Numbered from the stretch's first letter, positions 4,466 to 54,888 are shown. The stretch: 64,000 bases of DNA from Oopsacas minuta (GCA_024704765.1 JAKMXF010000298.1:434001-498000), one strand, 5' to 3'. A program made the numbers and translations. The notes: generated by a model from the letters alone, not told the origin.

Positions 4466-6394
4466 TACCTAAGTAGAAAATGGAAGAGAGAGAGGGCAGA
4501 AATTCAGAATAGATTGGCTAAACTAGGATACGATGAAATAAATCATAGCTACTATGTATTCTGAATTCCTGAGCAAAAGATTACCAGCATTTACAAATAG
4601 TTGAAAATCTGGCATAAATCTAACATAACTGAAAATAACTGAAAATCTTAGATCCGAATCTACATACTCGATTACCCCTAACAAACCGTTGAAAAGAAAT
4701 CTCTAGCTCCACTTTGTGAAATTTCGCTATTGATACCTGAGGCGCAAACCTCTGACTCAAATTTTATGTGTACCAATATTCATGTTACCGGAGTGCTAGA
4801 TTTCGCACGGCAGAGCGTACGGAAGTCGTCCATACCAATAGAATATCTCCTTATATAGGAAATTCACTAAAATTAGCTTCCCAACCGTAATATTCGCTGT
4901 AACCTAATAATGAAGGAAACATTTTTTTTAAAGTGGTATATGGAGCTTGCTCTGTTGTCAAACGAGATATTTTTCGAATTAGTCAATATTCAATCTTCAA
5001 ATTGTAGTTCATTAAACTCGCGTTATAACCAAGTCGGACACAATGAAATTTATAATGAAGTGGCCCAATGGTCAGTAAATCCATCCATCTAATTATATCA
5101 GTAAAACTTCGTGTATAATGAAATAGATAGATGGATACAACGAATTTCGCATATAACGAAGTTACGTATTTCCCCTTTAGGCAAAAATCTATTGAAATTC
5201 AGTCGTTATAACGAAGTCCGCTCATAACAACCCCGTTTGAATTAATAGTAATTTTGCTAAAATCAAAAACTCCGTATTTAAAGAACTTGATTAAAGATTT
5301 TCGGTATTATTGCTTTAATTTTACAAAAATTATACAACTTGTATAGCGGAATGATAATAGGTCCCGCGATCCTGAGCACTTAGTTATTATGAGGGTATAC
5401 CGTATTTGTGGATTTTCCTTTTTATTTGTACTGTGGCTGAGAAATTTGTCTAGGGATTAGTGTAAGTCTCTCCCATGATTTGCATATTTCTAATTCTGTA
5501 CTTGAATAATACATGATATAGTGGCCGGATAACTGAGTGAATTTAGTGCAGTTACCCATTTGGCCTTCGGAATTACCCCTTGCAAAGCAAAGCCTGCATT
5601 AAACATCATGACGAGCAATTTTATACATATAATAAATAGTGGGGGACCATCCCTGGATGCCATATATTGTCAGGCTGGACTATAAATAGCCAAGGACGTA
5701 TTGGGGGGGAACACTGTTCCCTTACTTTAAATCCCAAGAGGAATGAGGGGAACGCGAAGACGCTTCTTTATGGAAATATTTGGATTGTTAACTATATTTT
5801 AATTAGAAATTAGACTCCAACATTAAAGTCAACATTTTATCATCAAGTAATATATTTTGTATTATCCAAATATTGTGTAAGTATCGTTTACATGTGGAAA
5901 TGCTTATATTCCTTCGATTTTCAGCTAAAAAGTACTAACCTAGTTTCACTTGAATTTTCCACATTTTTAGTGTAAATATCTTGTAAAGATGAAACGTAGA
6001 CAAGTCTGGAAAACTAGGACATCAAAAGCCGGAGATTTTACCACATAAGAGGCACAAATTAAGTGGAAGGGTAGTGTTGGAGCGTTCCCTTACTTAAAAA
6101 TACACCCCTACATATAGCGTGACAGCCGCACACTTCTGAAACGAACAATTTTGCCTCTTGGGGGTATTAGTCATTCCAATGATTCACTGTGCTAGAGAGG
6201 TAAAACAATAATTTTCAACAAATTAGCGCATATGGGTCCCCAAAGATGGAAATGTAAGTGGACACTGATATATTTATAAATAATGTTATATTTTTGACAC
6301 TAAGAATAATAATAATGATGTCATATAAAGACAATAAGAAAGGTAAGTGATTTAGTTAGAAGTTGGATTATTTAGTAATTCTTTCTGGGGTGTT

Positions 6395-6763
6395 CTATGT
6401 AGCGACCCTCTTCCTGGAAAAGTCAACCTCCACTGTTTTGTCAACTTTGGATAATGCTTCTGATTTGGGTTTAGGAGCGTTTATGGCTTGTTCCACGCTG
6501 ATAGCTCCCGGTCCGAATGAGGACTTGCCAGAGTCAGGAGAGAGTGCGTAACCCTTGTTTGTACCGACTTTCGGGATTCCGGTGGCGGATTTTATACTCA
6601 CAGCTCCAGCTCCATAAGAATGGGAAGCAGACGATCTCTGGATACCGAGTTTCTCAGAGCGACCAGCTTTCCCAGTTGCTTGCTTTACGTGATCGATATT
6701 GATAGATCCGGCGGTGTAATCAGCACCCTTACCAGCAGATGGAGTCAATTTTCCGATTGGCAT
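6395..6763 (-). CDS. Orphan small basic G/S/A/K-rich protein with three 33-34-aa spaced repeats, 122 aa
   Basis: ATG-initiated, clean GC-richer ORF in AT-rich surroundings; motif [YF]xxG[SA][IV][NS][IV] at residues 16, 50 and 83. Confidence 0.6.
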   Translation of the reverse strand: MPIGKLTPSAGKGADYTAGSINIDHVKQATGKAGRSEKLGIQRSSASHSYGAGAVSIKSATGIPKVGTNKGYALSPDSGKSSFGPGAISVEQAINAPKPKSEALSKVDKTVEVDFSRKRVAT

Positions 6764-8112
6764 TTTCGTTTAGAATAAAACAAAGAAACTAACTAGGTGG
6801 GCGAATACAATAGTGAAATATGATAGTAAGGTATTTATGTGGCTATATATGGATGTTTCGTTGATCTAATTATGCCTATCTACGATTTAGGAATTCAGTG
6901 TTTGGTGTTTGGTTTCAATTTGAATCAAAACAAAGAAGCAATACATATTTTGGTTTCACAAGAAAATAATATGATTCAGCTAAATACATCGGTTCAGATG
7001 GAAAAAAAACCTTAGATTTACATATACTTTTCAAATGAGTTGGAGAAAACGAGGACGGAGAGAATTATAACGGAGTAACCCGGGTCAAAGCAAATTAGTA
7101 TAGTGTCAGCAGCTTCACTTGTTCGTGCTGCGCGGCTTCGAACACTGTCAAGATCATATACCCCATCCTATCACTTTCCATATGCTAGTCATCATACAGT
7201 TTTAATGTTTATTGCAAAATATAGACAATTAAGAGAATAGCTTCTATGAAAAATATGATTCTAAGTCTCTACTGTCTAACATAACATTGAATGGTAAATT
7301 TAAAGAATTTTCAGGAATAAAATTCGAATTTTTAAATTTTGTAATCGCTATAAATGATGGTCACTTGGGGCGTATGCCATTAATACAGAATTTCACGAAA
7401 ATTATTAAACTTATTGTCTACTGAACGTTGCTGCCAGCTTTCATCTCGTCAGCGCCAATAAGGGATATTCCACTGTTCTAACCATTTGTTAGACAGGAGA
7501 TAATTGCAGGATAATCATTTAGAGTTTTATCCATAGAATTCGAGGATAAAAACGTGAAGTTTAGCAGGGGTTAATAATATTGAATATCCTGAAATATTTC
7601 TCAGATCCAGTCAAGAGCCCAAAATCAGTCGGGGTCTGTTGCATTGCGGCATCTACACGGGGGTCAGGGTGGCGTGCCCCCCTGAAAAGAACCAAAACAC
7701 ATAACCCTGAGCTGCAGTACCATTCTGTCGGCTGGACATTTTACATTTTTGTCAATGCACTCAAGCGATGAACAATACAATATCTGAGGTGGCGAAGATG
7801 GTTTTCAGGGTTGAGTGCTGCACCACCGTGTACCACCCTAGCGGCGTCCCTGAACATAAAATCATCAAATTATCATATCAATGAGCTCAGAAAATTTCCA
7901 ACATCTATTCGGGCGAGGTGGGAACCAATAAAATTACTTTAAAATGTGTTTAGAGCATAAAATGCCAAAAGTAAACAGGCTCAGATAGAATTCATTAATT
8001 ATCCTCTTAAATGAACGGCAACTCCAAGAAATAAGTTATTAAGAAAATAAGTAAAAATTGTAAACAAAAATCAAACAAATATACAAAAATACAAAAATAA
8101 AAATATAAAAAA

Positions 8113-44174: not shown

Positions 44175-44763
44175 ATGGAGACTGCTAGGTTAATCCCCAA
44201 TCAAAACGCATATACTCGTCCTGGCCCAGGAGTAATAGGAACTCTGTTCGGTCCGTATCCTCTCAGAACCGGACCTAATTTCAAACAAGAGGGATACCCA
44301 GACTCTGTACAGATGAACAAGGAACCACAGAGAGTAATTTGTCCTACATGCAAGATTGAACAGGTAAATAATACAAATAATATGCTAGAAAAGAGTTAAC
44401 AAGTTCTCTTTGTAAATTCATGTTGGTTTAATGATATAATGTACTTAGGTAACTATGAAATACCGAACTATAGTCCAAATTGTGCATTTTAGCGAGACAC
44501 GACACAATCAATATCTACTCAACTATTAGGTATTTAATTTTATCCTCTAGACAACTGTAATTAGCAAGAAGTCTGGAAAAGCAGTAAACATACTCGCTCA
44601 ATTCATGATCATCGCTATATTATGGTATACTTGGTTATGGGCTCTCCCAATTATCCTTGTCCCAATTGCGTTGGTACCTTACTGTATAAAGAGGTTCTAC
44701 GACACGCTACATCACTGTCCTGTCTGTAATAAACTAATTGGAAAGAGACAGTTTGCTTTCTAG
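44175..44763 (+). CDS. LITAF-domain protein A, 2 exons (44175-44363, 44551-44763), 133 aa
   Basis: CPTC...hydrophobic stretch...HHCPVC...IG; phase-0 GT-AG intron. Confidence 0.85.
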
Positions 44764-45143
44764 CGATAAGGATTTCCAAATTACCAAACAAACAAATTAT
44801 GTTAAAGTCAGACTGGGTACAATTATGACTTATGAGAGATGTTTAGCAAGACTATCAATATGTGCAAGTTTTGTATTATTATGTAGCAAGGTATACCAGC
44901 AGATTTTGATAATATTACCCAAAATTATTCAAAAATACTCTTTATGCTAGAAATATGCCAGTCATATGCCAGAATTTAAAACATTATGCTTTATTTTATG
45001 ACAGAAAATTCTTTCTGCTAGAATTATGCTAGACAAGCTAGAAAGTACTAGTAACAACTCCAGCATTTATCGTATTCATAATTTTTAGTGAAAAGGCCTC
45101 ACTGAAATCCAAACGATTCATTTGTCAAACTAGATTTATACAT

Positions 45144-45326
45144 CAGTGGGACCTCGTTAATACGAACACAGTTAATACTTATTTCCGAATAAGACGAACA
45201 AATATTTACACATATCCAGGTCCCTATAGTGGATTTCCAATTAGTTTTGCTCCGGTTAAACGAACTCTATGTAAGGAGAACAAATTTTGACCCTCTGTTG
45301 GTGTTCGTATTAACGAGGTTCCGCTG
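45144..45326. mobile_element. pogo/Tigger-like MITE, 183 bp
   Basis: 26-bp TIR cagtgggacctcgttaatacgaacac / gtgttcgtattaacgaggttccgctg (2 mismatches); a related end occurs at ~8730-8785. Confidence 0.7.
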
Positions 45327-45513
45327 TCTGTATTTTTACACTATAATTGAGTAACTCAAATATGATAGCATCAATAATATATATGCCCAACCATGGCCGG
45401 CGCCGCCTATTTGAGAGAGTGGACTAGTGGGTGTCCGACTCTCAGGACGCCCACGGTGGCGCTGACCCTGCCAACTAAATTTTTTATTTTGAGCAAGTTG
45501 AGTTAGCAGTTCT

Positions 45514-46255
45514 ATGTCACAGCAAAGGAATCAAGTGCCTCGGGGCTATGAACGAGGACCACCACCAAATTACACCTCTGTTATGCCAACAGGAAACGAA
45601 TATGGTTCTTTAGTAGAGCAAATAGGACACAATCCTCAACATATAACTTGTCCAAATTGTAGAGTTACACAGGTAATGTATACTATCTTATTAATTTATT
45701 AATTTTTCGTGGAATTAATTCTGGGCTGGTATCTACATTCTCAACCGTATAGTTAGAGCGGTCCGTGCGTAATTTATAAATGTTGGGCGGACTCATGCAA
45801 CAATGCTAGATCCACTACCCACCAAAGTCGTCAGGCACTAATATTTATCATACAGAAATGAATTATATTTATTTGTATCATATGGGAAATATTGGTAGTT
45901 CCAATCAGCTCCAGTCTTAAATATCATAGCAAGCTACAACACATTCAATATTATATAATGAGATGGCAAAAAAAACTAGAATTATTTCATATGTATTACA
46001 TCATTATTGCCCTGAATTTATACTGTTGACTTTATTATTTAGATATCGAAGATACAAAGAGAAATAGGACCAGGTGCACTACGCTGTACTTTAATCATGT
46101 ACATAGCGGTGATATGCACTTTGATATTTATATTACCAGTTCTTATTGTTCCCTTCTTTTGTGTTCCACTCTGTATGAACCGCTACAAACAAACAGAACA
46201 TGTGTGTCCTTCATGCAATCACATCATTGGCGTATGCCGTATGAAAATAAAGTAG
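45514..46255 (+). CDS. LITAF-domain protein B, 2 exons (45514-45672, 46043-46255), 123 aa
   Basis: PPPNY motif, CPNC...hydrophobic stretch...HVCPSC...IG; intron at the same position as in LITAF A. Confidence 0.85.
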
Positions 46256-47134
46256 TCTATATTTATTATGTGTTTCTGGACATGCTCTTTCTATTTTATA
46301 TCCTGTTAATGTAAACTTTAACAAATTACTAGTTAATATATTTCAACGAATATCAGGCCCTCGGGAGGGCGAGACGCATTTCATTATCATTACCTTATTA
46401 TTTATGACGTTATTATAATACAAATAGCCATTTAATGGAAAATTGAATGACTCTACTTTGAAATATGTAAACTAAAGTAAACGTGTTATATGACTTTTGT
46501 GAAGAAAAATCTACTATTCACCTTATATAAGTAAATAAATTGTGTAGTTGAAACTTGAAAACATTGAGAAAATGGTGAGGTAATGACAATATGCTGAAAC
46601 AAGTTTCCAACTACAGTGAATTTGCCTTAGTTATTATCGCAGATATCACAAAATGAATACAGTAGAACCTCACAAAGTGGGGTAAGACTTCGGGAATACC
46701 CACTCCGACAAAGCGAGGGGTACCTAAAAAGGGCCCAAAACAACATCCAAGCCATTTATTCATTATTAATACCGTTACTCAATTGCCGAATAATAATATC
46801 CGAGAGTCGAATAAGAGATAATTATTCGACAGTCGAATAACGATGTTAATAACTTTGGGATTTTTCACTGATCTTTACCCCATTTATGAGATATACACCT
46901 CTTTAGGAGGTTTGGTCTTCGAAACAGGCCCTTCCTCCATACCAATTTGTGGGGCACCTACCTTGAAAAGCTCCAGTTCAGCGGTTTTGATTAATTTTAC
47001 AAGATTTTCTTGTCGAGTTATTTTATAATTTCAAAAGGATTCAGGTTGGCCCAGGGCTCCTGAAGGACCCATGCTTATATAAAAATAAGAGGCGTCCCAC
47101 TTCTCTGACGGAGGGGAAGGCTAAAAATACTGAT

Positions 47135-47262
47135 AAAAAGGAGGATAGCGTCTATCGCAGAAGAGATGCTTATCTGGGAATCGAACCCAGATTCTCACAT
47201 GAGCAGTGTGTGCGTTATATCCATTAAACTAATAAGCGAAGTAACGATAGACAAAGCCCCCT
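47135..47262 (-). ncRNA. Putative Pol III ncRNA (copy B): tRNA-like cloverleaf inside a 5'/3' panhandle, 128 nt
   Basis: A box TAGTTTAATGG, B box GGTTCGATTCC in a perfect T-arm CTGGG/CCCAG, outer stems AGGGGG/CCTCCT and GTCTATCGT/GCGATAGAC, T5 end; ~85% identical to 52204-52331 by hand alignment. Confidence 0.7.
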
Positions 47263-47285
47263 ACTTATATATAACCTCACAAGCT

Positions 47286-47293
47286 TATATATA
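47286..47293 (-). promoter_or_regulatory. TATA box at -31..-24 of ncRNA copy B
   Basis: TATATATA at the same offset as in copy A although the spacer sequences are unrelated. Confidence 0.5.
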
Positions 47294-48316
47294 TTCCATA
47301 ACTCTAATCAAAATTCTCTTATGGGTAGATAATATAATTGATACAGTAGTTAGAGAATATATATTAGATTGAGTATGATGAATGTAGATATAATTTAACA
47401 AAAAATATCGACTATAAGAAACATGAATAGTCTCCAGGGGTAACACCCGGAATTCCAGTGTAAGCGCGTTTTGGAGATATAATGTTCAATTCAGTGATAT
47501 AGGTCCCCCCCACCCAAACGAAGGTCACCCATATAGAACCTATAGGCTCAAGGAGATACATAGCTCTATATAGACTTCTCGCTTGTTGACCCAGATACAT
47601 TCCTTGTACGTGCTCGTTATTAAGAGGTTTCAGTTGTGCCAGAGTAACTCTCTTGCGAGTTGGTTCAGATTTTTACTGTTTTAGATTATGACTGCCCTCA
47701 CATGTTGTCCCAGAGGATCTATTTCCGAGATTACATATTCGCAAAAAGTTTGATGCAAAAAATGAAAACGAAACGAAATCAAATACAAAGAAGAGATTAC
47801 TGCTACAAATAATTTACATGCAAACGAAGTTAACGAACAGAAATAGTAATACAAAGAAAACCCTGCTGCAGCAAATCAAATCGTGCATCAAACATCCGGA
47901 CAACACCCAGAGGCAAGTCTGATACTAATCCAAACAACATCCTGACTACAGTAAGATTCGTTTGCATGTAATCTGTTTGCAAATAAGTAATCTGTCTATT
48001 TCCTGCATCGCTAGTAATTTAGTGTACAGGCCCGGTGACCCCCAAAACACTAGTGAATTCGGACCATCACGCCCAGAAAACGCTAACGATTTCACCTACG
48101 CCGGCCCTATATCGCTAGCGTGAACCACCTGCCCGCATGCAAGCTCCCAAAACGCGCTTGATCTATGTTTACTGAAATCATCAGTTACTTCATAAGGTGA
48201 AATTTACCCTATTTTGAGAACAGCGGACGTGAAGAAGAGAATTCTACTGAGAATGTATCATCAACAAAACCATATAAATATCATGTGATAAGTCAATGAA
48301 TTAATGGTACGATTGG

Positions 48317-48442
48317 CAGGATTGCCGCGGGTATGAGAATCATTTACTTGCTATGGGAATTCCCATATGAGAAAACCCATAGGAATTCCCACAGAAATCC
48401 TGTGAGAATGGGAATTGAAATTCCGTACCCATGGCAACCCTG
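48317..48442. mobile_element. hAT-type MITE, same family as 10912-11091
   Basis: TIR caggattgccgcggg / cccatggcaaccctg; shared core gaattcccacagaaatcctgtg; TSD degenerate. Confidence 0.65.
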
Positions 48443-49929
48443 ACAATGGTGGCTATCGGGCTAATAATCTGCAATTTAAAGCGGATCTGATGCTGTCCAG
48501 CTTTTATTCAGGTTTGATAGTTCATTTGTGCAGTAATGTCCAATTTTTTTGTAAAAAAATTGAAAATTCTACTGTGTTTATGCAAAACCCATCTTCTGCT
48601 AATTTTGATGAATCACTAGTTTTAAATGTGAAATCATTTTCAGTTTATGGAATTAAAGTTCCATGCATATTGCATTATTGCTGCCATGTGCCAATTTCGG
48701 AAGGGCATTAGAATACTTTTGATTAATCACGTGGTAACATAATTATGAATACAACCAATTGATTTTGTATTTTAACAGTTTCTATCAATGAATATTACCT
48801 CTTTTGAAACAATTTGGATGATGCAAGTTGGTTTAATAGTCTGATGGTATCAACTAGTATCCTGATAGAACAGTAAATGTATAAACACGCTAATTACTAA
48901 AATAGGGAAAAACAACAACAAATAATACGAATAATATAAACAAGGGGATAGAGAGAATAGAGCCTCTGTAGGTTGTGTTTTCATATAACATTGTTCCGTT
49001 AGTTGTGTATATATTCGGTATTCCAGTTTATAGCGATCACAAATAGAGCTACCAGACTTATCATATGGTAGATTTTCGAATTTTCATCTTGTGTGATTCT
49101 AGACAAGATAATATATCCAAATATACGAGTATTAAAATTGGGGGTAAAGAAACAAGTTATAGTGTATCATTGTCTGGTTGAGAAACTTTTATATAATTCC
49201 ATACGACATCGCAAATCGGCTAAATTAATTAAATAGTTTACGTTGCAGTTTTGTAAACTCGAACAGACTATCAGATAACCATTAAGTAAATATAACAACA
49301 TTCCAATAGGTTCTTCATATTTTATTTAAATATAAATAAGCTCTTGTTGACTTATTTTGAAATGGCGTTCGCCTATTCTCCCGTGAATTTTTCACTTCGA
49401 TAGGGCTGTAATTGGGCTACTCTAGCTATACTAAACTTAGTCATATTGTAATTACCTATTTTTAGGAGAACAATAACTAGCTAAGTTTGTTTCTAATGAA
49501 ATTGCCACAAAATACATTAGTTTCCTATAGTATATTATTTCGAAAATATTTTCGGATTTAAATTCCTACACATTTCCCAACCTTTTGATAAGAACCCCTT
49601 ATTAGCCTATATAGACCCCCCTCTATAGATTACAACTTCCCGTGCACCCTTCAGGAGTCTATGGCCCCTAGGTTGGATCCAGGGTTTATACATAAATTTC
49701 TGGACCGTCACTTTTTCTTACCCTGGCTCTCCTGGGATGGCACTTTTTTGGACGGTGACATATTGATCCTGACTAATTTGAGTCTCATGGCCGGTACTTT
49801 TAGGTGCCCGCCAAGCACTTAGATAAACCCCTGGTTGGATCACTATCCTACTCTATAAATGAAGGGCGCCCAAATACGAGTTTTCAACACCTTATTTATA
49901 ATTACACAACATTACCCTGTGTTATTAGC

Positions 49930-50613
49930 ATGTCAGGCCTGAAGCTATTCACAGACCCCATATCACAGCCATGTAGGGCTGTAATGATTTTACTCGATAT
50001 CAATAAAATCCAATTCGAAACGGTTCTGATACAAATATTGAAAGGAGAACATAAGACTAATCAGGAATTGAAGGCTGTAAATCCGAATTGTTTGATACCT
50101 GCATTGCTTGATGGGACTTTTTCACTTTATGAGAGTGGAGCTATTCTTAGGTATATTTGTAATACTCGGCCTGTTGCAGATAATTGGTATCCTAAGGACC
50201 CTAAAATACGCGCTAAAGTTGACCAGTATTTGGACTGGCATCACTCAGCGATCAGAATATCTACTGTTTGGTTTTTGGCACAGTATGTCTCAAAAAAACC
50301 TCCCTCAGACCCTGAGATCGTGAAAGTTAAGGAGAAATTGGTTGCTTCGCTTACAATCCTAGACAGTCATACTTTGAAAGAGAATAAATTCATTGCTGGA
50401 GAAAACATTTCAATCGCTGATTTGCAATTATTGTGTGAACTATCTGAATTCTGGATTGTCAACAAAAATATTTACGCTGGATTCCAGAGGATTGAAGAGT
50501 GGGTGAAAAATTGTGTCGAGTTGCTAAATCCACATTTCGACCACAATAACGCAGCTATTATGCAACTTAAAGAAAGTGGTGCACTTGGTTCCGACCCTGA
50601 CCCACTCAAGTAA
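49930..50613 (+). CDS. Glutathione S-transferase, theta class, 227 aa (ATG at 49930)
   Basis: DPISQPCRAV, VNPNCLIPALLDGTFSLYESGAILRYI, WYPKD, VDQYLDWHH, FIAGENISIADL. Confidence 0.9.
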   Translation: MSGLKLFTDPISQPCRAVMILLDINKIQFETVLIQILKGEHKTNQELKAVNPNCLIPALLDGTFSLYESGAILRYICNTRPVADNWYPKDPKIRAKVDQYLDWHHSAIRISTVWFLAQYVSKKPPSDPEIVKVKEKLVASLTILDSHTLKENKFIAGENISIADLQLLCELSEFWIVNKNIYAGFQRIEEWVKNCVELLNPHFDHNNAAIMQLKESGALGSDPDPLK

Positions 50614-51791
50614 CCTTTGTTCAGAAGTTAGTATCCATAGTCCATTTAGGGATTTATAGAGTTTGCTTCTCTTCTTCAAGCTTTGTATCCATATTTACGT
50701 GGATATATTGTATATTGAAACTAAAACTATTTTGTGTTTCAACATGATATGACTAGCATGGACAACTCACATACATTCTGGGTTGCTTAATGTGAAACAC
50801 GAAGGGAGCAAAATCTTATTAATAATAAACAGACTTCATAGTAATGGAACTGAATTCAATATAATCCTTTGGAATGACTTTGTTCACAAGCAAGGATGAA
50901 AAGCTGTTAACTACCAATTTGACTGTTTGCGGTTAATAGCCACAATTCTCCAAGCAATCAACTGGTAAATTTGCAGCTATTTGAGCTCTTAAACCAAATT
51001 ATTGCAGTAATCAGCCTAATTTGAATCATAACAAATAATTTTAAGCTCCCAATTTTAGGTAATACGTATTTATAGACAGGCCGTAATAAGCAGTTTTCAG
51101 TTTGTCAAGTTGAGCTAATATTTCCTAGGAAAATGGTGGAAAACGACTGAATGGTGGAACCAAGCAGAAATTGATATAAGTAGGCATAAAAACGATCAGT
51201 TTGTCGGATAATAGTTCATTAAAATATCGGTTGTATCAAATATTGATGCCAATTCTTCGGTAAAAGAAATCAAACATGGGGGGCTAAGGTATCGACAAAT
51301 TTGGGAAAAAATCTCGATAATCAATTTCTAGAGCCAGGGTTACTCGGGTGGCTTGGCCAGAAACAGAATCATATAAATAGTGTTAAATTGCTCAGTTTAG
51401 TAGTCTAATACCTTTATTCCGCTTAAGAGGGTAAATTGGCCTGGTCCTGATGTGACCATGTGAAGCGGAGTCTAGTGGATATATATATATGTTCAACAGG
51501 GGTAATATGCGAAATTGGGCATTTTTGCATTAGCCATAATGCTGGATAATGTAGCTATTTGCTAACTTCTCAGGCATTTTGCAAAATGTCTCCTTCATTA
51601 GCCAATTTGCATAATGCCAAATATTGTGCAGTAGTAGGAGCCGCATAACCGGGACACCTCGGGAGTAAGGTTTTGTCCCCATTATCCGGACATCCCGTTT
51701 TACCAGTGTAAATCTTTAGATGCTTTACTATTAGACTCGGTTAAGCAGCTTCCACTGTATCAATTGTTTCGTTCGTTCCGGACATTAGGTA

Positions 51792-52028
51792 CAGTAGACC
51801 CTCGGTATCCGAACAGCAGGAAGTTTGTTTAGTTTGTGAAAATTGTACACATTTTTGGAGCTTCTGACTACTCTAGTACTAGTTTTTTTGAAAGCTGTCG
51901 TGGTATTATGCCTTAGTGGCATGAACATGCAGTAAAATATACTAAATTACAAAATCCTCTATTTCACTTATCCGAACACCATACTTGAAATTCAAAGACA
52001 AGGTGTTCGGGTAATCGAGGGCGAACTG
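51792..52028. mobile_element. pogo/Tigger-like MITE
   Basis: TA|cagtagaccctcggtatccgaac ... gttcgggtaatcgagggcgaactg|TA. Confidence 0.6.
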
Positions 52029-52172
52029 TACATATGTCCAAATTGCTGGACATTATGCAATTGCAGGTTGTCTAATTGATGTACAGCTTCATAAATTATC
52101 ATTCAGGATGCATTGCATCCCTGTATCCATATCTTACCTAACCATAAGAGTAATTAAAGTAAATTATCGAAG

Positions 52173-52180
52173 TATATATA
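52173..52180 (+). promoter_or_regulatory. TATA box at -31..-24 of ncRNA copy A
   Basis: TATATATA upstream of the inferred start at 52204; same offset as copy B. Confidence 0.5.
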
Positions 52181-52203
52181 TGAATGAGAGTATGTTAAAT
52201 ATC

Positions 52204-52331
52204 AGGAGGCCTTGTCTATTGCTACTTCGCTTATTAGTTTAATGGTATAACGCACATACTGCACTTGTGAATTCTCGGTTCAATTCCCAGATAAGCCTCT
52301 CTCTACTGCAATAGGCGCAATCCTCCTTTTT
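52204..52331 (+). ncRNA. Putative Pol III ncRNA (copy A): tRNA-like cloverleaf (52228-52298) inside a 5'/3' panhandle, 128 nt
   Basis: A box TAGTTTAATGG, B box GGTTCAATTCC, acceptor-like GCTTAT/ATAAGC, outer stems AGGAGG/CCTCCT and GTCTATTGC/GCAATAGGC, T5 end. Confidence 0.7.
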
Positions 52332-53252
52332 GGCAAATTCAGGGCCATTAAAGAATGGAATTGTGCATGATAGTATCCACTGCGTAGAAGTAAAGTAATT
52401 AGATGCTTATTAATAAGTCAAAGTCAAGGGGCTTGTAACTCTCTAAATGGTCCGGGCCGTGGAAAAATATGGCCGACATCAATAAATGCAATATTCTCAA
52501 CTAATCTGATCGAAAATCGATTCAATAAGTAGATATCGATCTCAAGACCTAATCTAACAACCACGAGGAAGTTAGACATCAGTGACAACATACAGAAGTC
52601 TGAAACTAACTAATAATGATAATCATGACAATATTAGTGCGGTAGCTAAATCAGATGCGGGCGGTGGAGCTGAAATATGTTTCCAACTAACAGTGGATTA
52701 ATATATTCTAATAATTGTGTACTTTGGTGAGTTCAACACTGCCAATATAAAACCCAATACAGGACCTTAGGCTCGGGTCCTGCCGGATTAATGGCATAGT
52801 ATAATTATAATAGATTTAAGAGTACCAGAACGAATTTCTTTCTTGACAATCCAATAGTATCGTTAGTTAAGGAAATATAGCAGTAAGTACGTCCTACATT
52901 GCTTTCAAAATGATACGTGTATATTACAAGTGTTAGAAGTTGTAACGTCAATTATTAAATATATCAGGTTTTCAAATGTTAAATAATTATTGAAGTAGCC
53001 CCACAGATAGAACACGACCTGGTCGAAAGGTAGTTTAGAACTAACCAAGGTAATATACTTAAAAGCGAGATATTAACGATAGAGCATATCTAACAAATGT
53101 ATAGCAAATAACAACATTAATGTGTTATCAAATATAAAACACTACAACGTCGTTAGAATCTACGAGTATAGTATACGTAACCAGCCAATATAACCAAATC
53201 AATAATATGCATAAAAGAAGTAGCAAATTTGTTTTAGAAGCTCAGAGAGAAG

Positions 53253-53609
53253 CTACAGTCTCTTGTGTTTACCGATTAGCCATTTGCAGTTGGGACAACG
53301 ATGCTCCACATCTTTTAGCGAATCGATAACACAGGGTATCCAGAAGCAAGGCCAGCAAATGAGTAGGAATATTATTAGAGAAATCAAGATTGTGAGTGTA
53401 CCTACTACAAAGTTTACTTCAGTTGTCACATGTTTGTGGCAGTTAGGACAGACACAAGCAACGGAGGATTCTCCGAAGCTAGTAGGGAGGATATTCACCA
53501 CTTGAGGGGCAGGAGCGGGCACTGGTTGGGGTGGGTAAAGGTAGCCTGGATTTTGTGGGGGAGGAGGTCCATAGGGAGGAGGTTGAATCAGAGGATCTTT
53601 CTCAGTCAT
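53253..53609 (-). CDS. LITAF-domain protein C, intronless, 118 aa
   Basis: PPPY motif, Pro-rich N-terminus, CVCPNC...hydrophobic stretch...HRCPNC...IG. Confidence 0.92.
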   Translation of the reverse strand: MTEKDPLIQPPPYGPPPPQNPGYLYPPQPVPAPAPQVVNILPTSFGESSVACVCPNCHKHVTTEVNFVVGTLTILISLIIFLLICWPCFWIPCVIDSLKDVEHRCPNCKWLIGKHKRL

Positions 53610-53938
53610 ACTAACTAACGATAATTAATAAATATTCATTTAATTATTGTCATCACATTGATACTTATATGTATACGTCATGCCCTGTAGATGGTTCAGT
53701 TGGTAAGAAGTCCATCTGACCAACATTGGACACTTAGTAAGATGTTAGTTAACCGGATAAATCTACGTTACCCGTATTAGGTAAACCTGACAAATTGAAA
53801 ACTGATTGCTATATGCTGCTGGATTGTATAGGAGCAGTTCAAACGTTACGTAACTTTACTTAGGGGGTGTCCAACCTGCATAACACCTTGTTTATGGTTT
53901 ACGCTTCTAAATTTTTCATTTCCTGAGAGAACACTATA

Positions 53939-54175
53939 CCGTAGTCTGGGGCTACTTTGGCCTACTGGGTTTGCTTTAGCCCAAATATCAGAGTTTCAAA
54001 GAAACTAGATTAGATTCAGTATTATACTTGAATATGACTTGGCAAATTTTTAACGAATTTTCAAATATCGTTAGACAATTTCGAATACAAATACAATATC
54101 TATTCGATAGGTAAGGAAATTTCAATATTTGGGCTAAAGCAAACCCAGTGGGGCCAAAGTAGCCCCAGTTTACGG
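53939..54175. mobile_element. Tc1/mariner-type MITE with ~50-bp TIRs, 237 bp
   Basis: TA|ccgtagtctggggctactttggcctactgggtttgctttagcccaaatat ... atatttgggctaaagcaaacccagtggggccaaagtagccccagtttacgg|TA. Confidence 0.85.
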
Positions 54176-54888
54176 TACCTCAAATTGATCTCAAATAATG
54201 TAAGTTAAATATTATAAGCCTACCTGATTTAATCAATTAATAATATAATTAGTACCATATTGTTGAGTTATATAAAGCTTCCCTAATTAGTACACTGGAG
54301 GCAAGTTAAATACTTCTAAAAATACAATGTGATAGATAGATAGACAAATATGGTATGCTAGATGTAATATGAGCAGAGGTGCCGGATGGATTATGGATAA
54401 TGATGGCGGTCATGGTCTCACTCCGCAAAAAACGAGGGTAGATTTTTTGTTTATCAACGATTTGAATTTGAGATCCGTATTCCATATGGATATGTTATTC
54501 ATATATGAAATGGATTACGGATTGGATTTGGACTATGATTTGGATCCATCCGGCCTATATTGTACGTACATACCTAAATCAACTTATAGAATCTGATTCT
54601 ATATTAAAATCTCTCTGAAGGAATTTGTTCAGTTGTTTATGTTACGCAATTGAGCTCCATTTATGAAATAGGGAGCTGAATCTGGGCTCCAAAAGAATCG
54701 TGACACGGGGAAGAGAGGGACCCAAAATGCGTTTAGGGAATATTGCGTACATGCATCACGTAACGTTTGAACGGTCCCTTATAGAGCACTGATTTAGCTA
54801 TCTTCCAGAATAAATTGTACGTAGGTGCTTAGAAGATATAAACAGATAATATGTATATATGCTTTAATATTTAAAGATAACTGGAATC

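Follow-up and report, generated by a model that had tools for sequence, protein, structure and literature searches.

A tRNA-like core inside a panhandle: two candidate RNA polymerase III genes of a glass sponge, Oopsacas minuta, and their possible relation to vault RNA

In the genome of the glass sponge Oopsacas minuta, two copies of a 128-nt unit, which we call genes A and B, lie within a stretch of 64 kb (bases 434001-498000 of contig JAKMXF010000298.1, assembly GCA_024704765.1), hereafter the window. They look like selectively maintained genes of RNA polymerase III (Pol III) for a non-decoding RNA, whose tRNA-like core is closed by a panhandle of leader and trailer. It is, in our judgement, very probable that both are real and functional genes for a non-coding RNA (ncRNA), their transcription being what we infer. 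The RNA would either belong to the vault family, with its tRNA centre still intact, or be a tRNA-derived Pol III RNA of a new sort. The explanation we favour, to which we give about even weight, is that the two units are maintained as Pol III genes and encode a vault-type RNA with a tRNA-derived module at its centre; membership of the vault family itself is unproven.

Two paralogous genes and their promoters

Genes A and B are divergently oriented, 5 kb apart, and flank a theta-class glutathione S-transferase (GST) gene (49930-50613). A previous reading of the DNA, made without databases and here called the sequence-only reading, had proposed two units of 128 nt with about 85% identity, and both are found (Table 1): in an alignment of 130 columns, 111 are identical, 16 carry substitutions and 3 are gaps. 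A repeat search returns the pair as the sole sizeable inverted repeat within the surrounding 10 kb. The same reading had homology ending abruptly on both sides. This holds for the 3′ side, where similarity drops to chance level downstream of the T5 run, but not for the 5′ side, where an ungapped inverted repeat of 116 nt spans about -74 to +42. The island of similarity between the genes is a repeated unit of 202 nt.

This additional similarity takes in promoter elements. The TATA box TATATATA at -31..-24, the internal A and B boxes and the T5 terminator described earlier are all in place in both copies, but that description had overlooked a conserved block at -71..-52, which resembles a proximal sequence element (PSE). 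The core of this block, CTA.CCATAAGAG, stands in the same register in A and B, and the 9-mer CCATAAGAG has only two occurrences in the window, one in each PSE-like block. A CTGTATC motif is found around -84, one base off register between the genes, and the spacer at -23..-1 has diverged (~39% identity). The spacing of PSE-like block and TATA box in both genes fits the geometry of small nuclear RNA (snRNA)-type, or type 3, promoters, the element being called PSE-like from its position; in human type-3 genes, the PSE is located near -66..-47 and the TATA box near -31..-25. Within the units, the A box TAGTTTAATGG occupies +32..+42 in both genes and the B box reads GGTTCGATTCC in A and GGTTCAATTCC in B, all of them a good fit to the tRNA-type consensus. 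The promoter thus looks like a hybrid, snRNA-type with internal boxes added, and Pol III promoters that combine upstream elements with internal boxes are known in the genes for vault RNA and selenocysteine tRNA (tRNA-Sec).

Because the conserved islands keep fixed distances amid diverged spacers, selection has probably acted on the snRNA-type promoter. The PSE-like element and the TATA box would place the Pol III start at A(+1). The TATA box is the likely determinant of this start, since the A box, 32 nt away from +1, is too distant for a TFIIIC-directed start that includes the 5′ strand of the panhandle. The internal boxes, which lie in the tRNA-like core, would probably add TFIIIC binding, and Pol III would halt in the T5 run, leaving a U tail.

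Table 1. Positions of the two genes, their elements and the third copy, numbered along the window
Feature	Position	Strand	Details	Basis
Gene A, 128-nt unit	47135..47262	minus	+1 = A at 47262; ends in T5	own covariance model (R1), 158.6 bits
Gene B, 128-nt paralogue	52204..52331	plus	+1 = A at 52204; ends in T5	own covariance model (R1), 151.8 bits
TATA box of gene A	47286..47293	minus	-31..-24, TATATATA	comparison with register fixed to +1
TATA box of gene B	52173..52180	plus	-31..-24, TATATATA	comparison with register fixed to +1
PSE-like element of gene A	47314..47333	minus	-71..-52, contains CCATAAGAG	fixed-register comparison
PSE-like element of gene B	52133..52152	plus	-71..-52	fixed-register comparison and inverted-repeat search
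Panhandle 5′ strand of A	47244..47262	minus	RNA 1-6 and 10-19; pair probabilities 0.93 and 0.86	
Panhandle 3′ strand of A	47139..47158	minus	RNA 105-114 and 119-124	folding and alignment
Panhandle 5′ strand of B	52204..52222	plus	pair probabilities 0.96 and 0.98	
Panhandle 3′ strand of B	52308..52327	plus		folding and alignment
tRNA-like core of A	47166..47238	minus	loop CUGCUCA; A box 47221-47231, B box 47177-47187	RF00005, 44.2 bits; ARAGORN, tRNA-Ser(GCU)
tRNA-like core of B	52228..52298	plus	loop CUGCACU; A box 52235-52245, B box 52277-52287; C.C mismatch in T stem	RF00005, 37.0 bits
Third near-identical copy or divergent allele (footprint)	47158..47264	minus	~107-nt contig	present in 4/4 runs

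The panhandle and the tRNA-like core

Leader and trailer are predicted to form the two further stems already proposed for them. In both RNAs, a terminal helix of 6 bp is followed by a 3x4-nt internal loop and a second helix of 10 bp, with the mean pair probabilities in the thermodynamic ensemble that are given in Table 1 for the 6-bp and the 10-bp helix, in this order; the leader-trailer duplex alone is stable (-22 kcal/mol). Between the two genes, 5 of the 32 paired panhandle positions have changed. They fall on four pairs, all of which are still canonical: G-U>A-U, U-A>U-G, the double change C-G>U-A, and U-G>C-G. Among the unpaired positions, 12 of 62 differ, and in the stems of the cloverleaf 2 of 36, one leading to a wobble and the other to a break in the T stem of B. 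When five random substitutions on panhandle positions were simulated, 16 of 16 pairs stayed intact in 0.2%-3.5% of the trials (P 0.002-0.035, depending on the assumed transition bias). The sequence-only reading had taken the five pairing-preserving substitutions as the signature of selection on a fold; the pairing is kept, on four pairs, but with two sequences and this range of P the strength of the signature is modest. Together with the 85% identity of the linkers, the compensatory changes point to selection on the full-length RNA. A microRNA-like role of the leader-trailer duplex was rejected, its 16 interrupted base pairs being presumably too short for Dicer-type processing.

The centre of the RNA shows the cloverleaf with the stems and loops that had been listed for it. 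Both cores exceed the cut-off of the Rfam tRNA family (RF00005, 29 bits), at 44.2 bits for A and 37.0 for B, and ARAGORN calls the core of A only, not that of B. The nucleotides of the tRNA tertiary contacts are kept, namely U8, A14, G18-G19, U33, the GUUCRAUUC T loop (with R57 standing for G in A and for A in B) and the A15/U48 pair, and make an L-shaped fold plausible. The linkers between panhandle and acceptor stem, of 6 and 9-11 nt, are single-stranded.

Several features set this core apart from a working tRNA. At pair 1-72, A has C.A and B has C.C, so that six pairs of the acceptor stem are left; all copies have a C at position 37; the anticodon arm counts four pairs; and one and the same body carries three anticodon loops, with GCU in A, GCA in B and UCA in a third copy described below. 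In addition, the 'Ser' version, the core of A, is devoid of a long variable arm. As judged from the sequence, the core is not a decoding tRNA, because of the mismatched pair 1-72, C37, the differing loops and the missing variable arm. The first three of these arguments had been put forward previously, and each is borne out (mismatches C.A/C.C, a pyrimidine at 37, loops CUGCUCA and CUGCACU).

An unusual tRNA precursor could still account for part of this anatomy. The panhandle would then be mere leader-trailer pairing, and RNase P and RNase Z would free a tRNA-like RNA of 72 nt, or small RNAs from the leader-trailer duplex, as the active products. A core that passes the tRNA model and keeps its tertiary-contact nucleotides, single-stranded linkers beside the acceptor stem and a stable duplex are all what such a precursor would offer, and a mycobacterial YrlA is indeed cleaved by RNase P (PMC4201824). 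However, a 7-bp acceptor stem is a major RNase P determinant (PMC4201824), a requirement that bears on the possible escape of the 6-bp stem, mismatched at 1-72, from processing. The pyrimidine at 37, the GCU, GCA and UCA loops on one body and a 'Ser' form without long variable arm are likewise hard to reconcile with a precursor, as are the compensatory changes of the panhandle and the 85% identity of the linkers. We consider this explanation unlikely, and the core is better seen as a poor RNase P substrate in an RNA that would stay full length.

Copy number, transcript signal and genomic neighbourhood

Contigs of four sequencing runs, all from one sample, were aligned to 5.8 kb of the locus at 80% likeness. 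Three of the runs look like DNA, and the remaining one, X4, looks like RNA-seq, possibly poly(A)-selected. In run X1, the depth over genes A and B is 255-308, next to single-copy flanks of ~230-290. The true interspersed repeats at 48352-48545, 49710-49903 and 51262-51455 reach 4,500-7,600 in the same run, which is 20-30x the single-copy level; these short repeats and another one at 51806-51999, which attract many divergent contigs, are found between the RNA genes and immediately before the start of GST. Our own covariance model (R1, with rough E-values) has just two matches, genes A and B, in ~82 kb of contig comprising the window and ~18 kb of flanks; no further copies occur in the 10 kb to the left and 8 kb to the right of the window, and a separate 20.7 kb of this contig, where a second GST is located, gave none either.

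A contig of ~107 nt, present in all four runs, stems from a divergent allele or from a third copy that is nearly identical to A. Its differences from A are confined to RNA positions 43, 56, 57, 59 and 61, and its loop is UUUCACA. With four of these five differences in the anticodon stem-loop, the tip of the core varies while the remainder is held.

Transcripts of the RNA genes were sought in X4, where A and B are covered 5-14x, as are their flanks, vs 2,300-3,800x for the GST exon; for an RNA of 128 nt with no poly(A) tail, this result is at best weak negative evidence, and it is uninformative if the library was poly(A)-selected. The depth around the GST exon is 5-60. One X4 contig over the GST coding sequence has 10 letters of non-genomic origin (AAAAACTTAC) just before 49927, 3 nt upstream of the ATG; they might come from a spliced leader or from an exon further upstream.

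For comparison with relatives, we used the syntenic loci (~140 kb) around the GST orthologues of five related sponge assemblies (L001, L002, L009-L011) and the LITAF orthologues of two (L012, L013), taken from the ENA assemblies ERZ25072730, ERZ25071281, ERZ25766962, ERZ25072740, ERZ25069837 and ERZ20067936. None of the seven loci contains the RNA gene by covariance model (filters off for L001 and L002), ARAGORN or Rfam. The five GST loci keep the upstream NHL and UBA_HYPK genes and hold no copy, tRNA or Rfam match. Since these seven orthologous loci are empty, the insertion sites of A and B are lineage-specific. A metagenome scan with a degenerate pattern of both panhandle strands gave six matches, none of which fits the model, and they are put down to chance.

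These data also bear on the notion that the two units are non-functional DNA, either a tRNA-derived short interspersed nuclear element (SINE) or a duplicated tRNA pseudogene kept alike by gene conversion. The missing transcript signal in X4, a region with interspersed repeats and the absence from the syntenic loci of relatives are what this notion would predict. On the other hand, the depth is single-copy to about 2x vs 20-30x for the nearby repeats, there is neither an A-rich or LINE-like tail (LINE, long interspersed nuclear element) nor a target-site duplication, and the PSE-like and TATA elements stand in register amid diverged spacers, an arrangement that is not copied by retroposition. 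Every change in the panhandle stems, moreover, keeps pairing. The sequence-only reading had reserved the name of ordinary SINE for hundreds of truncated copies with target-site duplications and no upstream TATA; what we find is single-copy depth in X1 with TATA and PSE-like elements conserved, and a SINE was rejected. Non-functional DNA in either form seems very unlikely.

The neighbourhood of the genes has its own peculiarities. Synteny breaks right after GST (50613-53253): the five relatives continue with AMP-binding and NADAR genes, and O. minuta with gene B, a LITAF gene and a large ankyrin gene, a LITAF-ankyrin linkage that the relatives keep elsewhere (L012, L013). The pair of RNA genes is flanked on either outer side by LITAF-like genes, at 44175-46255 (+) and 53253-53609 (-). 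The inner one on the left (end 46255) and the one on the right each run convergently with the neighbouring RNA gene, at ~880 and ~920 nt, which gives a mirror-image layout round GST. A recent inverted duplication that included these flanking genes was rejected, as their C-terminal parts are only ~38-42% identical, and a shared duplication, if any, would be old. About 300 nt downstream of gene A, a hairpin of ~80 nt (46767-46848) scores 25 and 19 bits on its two strands with the mir-230 model, far below the cut-off of 72.7, and probably represents a palindromic repeat. Between the LITAF gene on the right, past its 5′ end, and the ankyrin gene, nested inverted repeats at 53937-54177 with arms of 26 nt and 42 nt, 83-92% complementary and 118-189 nt apart, look like a miniature inverted-repeat transposable element (MITE).

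Relation to vault RNA and to other tRNA-like RNAs

Among the particles of animal cells, vaults rank with the most abundant and the least understood. When all of Rfam was searched at a lenient threshold, gene A aligned with the Vault family (RF00006, curated gathering cut-off 34 bits) at 28.6 bits, with an E-value of 0.004 in 6.5 kb and 0.039 in the window. Model positions 1-99 cover exactly 47134-47263, and gene A is the sole Vault match in the 64 kb. In this alignment, 14 of the 14 panhandle pairs of the model form, and the letters common to gene and model include GGC-UUU, GUUACUUCG, the B box, CGCU-UCC on the 3′ side of the internal loop, and the U tail. The proposal of an undescribed-looking family stands in so far as no Rfam family covers the whole unit at its cut-off, but it has to accommodate an alignment of gene A to Vault over its exact length. 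The suggested checks against Vault and Y RNA (RF00019) thus end in a sub-threshold match for A and B in the first case and no match in the second; YrlA, 7SK and other Rfam families likewise gave no match at E up to 10.

The likeness to vault RNAs extends to several levels. Both have the make-up of Pol III genes, with an upstream TATA box and proximal element, internal A and B boxes and an oligo-T terminator, motifs that both sponge copies hold in the same register. The length of the sponge RNA is within the vault range of 80-150 nt, with a variable centre between conserved ends, and the 5′ and 3′ ends build the same succession of a 6-bp helix, an internal loop and a helix of 8-10 bp. The centres differ: that of the sponge RNA is a whole cloverleaf with a score above the tRNA cut-off, whereas vertebrate vault RNAs retain no more than the two boxes, A and B, located in or beside the panhandle; the two sponge scores, 28.6 and 14.3 bits, also fall below the curated cut-off.

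With regard to its possible partners, major vault protein is present in sponges (PMC3762200), and TEP1 contacts vault RNA via its TROVE domain (PMC3762200, PMC12547018). Vault RNAs have been called 'largely unknown beyond deuterostomes' (PMC2655684): apart from a separate case in trypanosomes, deuterostomes are the only group where they have been traced, with slim sequence conservation outside the A and B boxes (PMC2655684, PMC3762200). Our literature search found no description of a sponge vault RNA or of a tRNA core in a vault-like panhandle. The two glass-sponge genome papers offer tRNAscan and barrnap annotation only, or nothing on ncRNA. The calls in the O. minuta paper, from tRNAscan-SE and barrnap only, include a 'suppressor tRNA', and one may speculate that it is a member of the RNA family described here. 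A vault-type role is our best single guess because of the Vault alignment, the major vault protein of sponges (PMC3762200) and the gap in vault RNA outside deuterostomes (PMC2655684). Strict homology, by which the family would be a divergent vault RNA, we regard as a serious possibility that stops a little short of even.

Under the vault-type explanation, the first 19 nt and the last ~20 nt of the paired region in a product of ~128 nt would zip into the 6-bp and 10-bp helices around the 3x4-nt loop, and the tRNA-derived module would hang inside on single-stranded linkers. This module would stay attached, its acceptor end being imperfect and tethered on both sides. Panhandle, conserved internal loop and U tail could form a platform for a TROVE-domain protein, such as the TEP1 of vaults, and for La, and the tRNA-like centre could be the counterpart of the variable central domain of vertebrate vault RNAs.

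A number of observations weigh against this picture. Gene B reaches only 14.3 bits (E 1.6) with the Vault model and gene A remains under the cut-off, a part of the score being due to generic features such as the panhandle, the B box and the U run. The pair probability of the cloverleaf in the thermodynamic ensemble is low (0.29-0.45); such low thermodynamic support is usual for A/U-rich tRNA sequences. The covariation comes from two sequences only and all five changes are transitions, which makes its support modest. To these are added the seven empty syntenic loci and the flat X4 depth over both genes.

Some of the same points would suit a tRNA-derived Pol III RNA confined to this lineage and without homology to vault RNA, either a Y-RNA-like partner of Ro60, with a terminal stem and a tRNA mimic as in YrlA, or the RNA of a wholly new ribonucleoprotein. 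In such a case, B would be expected to fit the Vault model barely and A to stay below the cut-off, as they do, and a type-3-style promoter with a terminal stem also suits Y RNAs; bacterial Y RNAs even bear a tRNA-like module (PMC4201824). Yet Rfam Y_RNA and YrlA do not match, even when 231 nt are searched at E up to 10, and the shared unpaired letters and the layout of 6-bp helix, internal loop and 8-10-bp helix fit the Vault model specifically. As for the Y-RNA-like version, the protein-binding stem of YrlA leaves the tRNA mimic elsewhere, and no tRNA-like domain is apparent in metazoan Y RNAs (PMC4201824). An origin independent of vault RNA is possible, although we hold it to be doubtful.

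If the RNA is of the vault type, it would provide a starting point from which vault RNAs could be found throughout non-bilaterian animals, and a concrete model for their origin from tRNA genes. A bolder and rather tentative proposal is that it is an ancestral-type vault RNA still holding a whole tRNA, the first outside bilaterians. Vault RNAs would then go back to a tRNA gene that came under an snRNA-type promoter and was enclosed by a panhandle for protein binding, with the anticodon tip as an exchangeable specificity module. Should it prove not to be a vault RNA, it would still be a compact case, open to testing, in which a new Pol III RNA has adopted a tRNA fold as one of its modules.

Other known systems share one or another trait with the sponge genes. 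Like tRNA-derived SINEs, they have a tRNA-related head with A and B boxes and a Pol III terminator, but they are low-copy, with a conserved external promoter, no tail or target-site duplication, and a closing helix under apparent selection. RNAs of the mascRNA type (PMC9777231) are also cloverleaf-shaped and not aminoacylated for translation; these are released by RNase P and RNase Z from long transcripts of Pol II, whereas the sponge RNA would come from a stand-alone Pol III gene and have its ends locked together. The genes for tRNA-Sec combine, as here, an upstream PSE and TATA box with an internal B box on a tRNA-shaped gene, and the third sponge copy even has a UCA loop. However, the 9/4 acceptor/T-stem fold, the long variable arm and the 6-bp D stem of tRNA-Sec are missing from the sponge RNA, whose leader of 25 nt and trailer of ~30 nt are conserved and paired. 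The nearest architectural analogue is found in the bacterial Y RNAs YrlA and Yrn1 (PMC4201824), where a protein-binding stem of the RNA ends carries a non-decoding tRNA mimic with features of the D and T arms. These RNAs are bacterial and Rsr-bound, their stem emerges at the place of the anticodon arm and not beyond the acceptor stem, and the sponge genes have neither sequence similarity nor an Rfam match to them. If the proposed architecture is true, the tRNA-mimicking Y RNAs of bacteria would have an animal counterpart in the sponge RNA.

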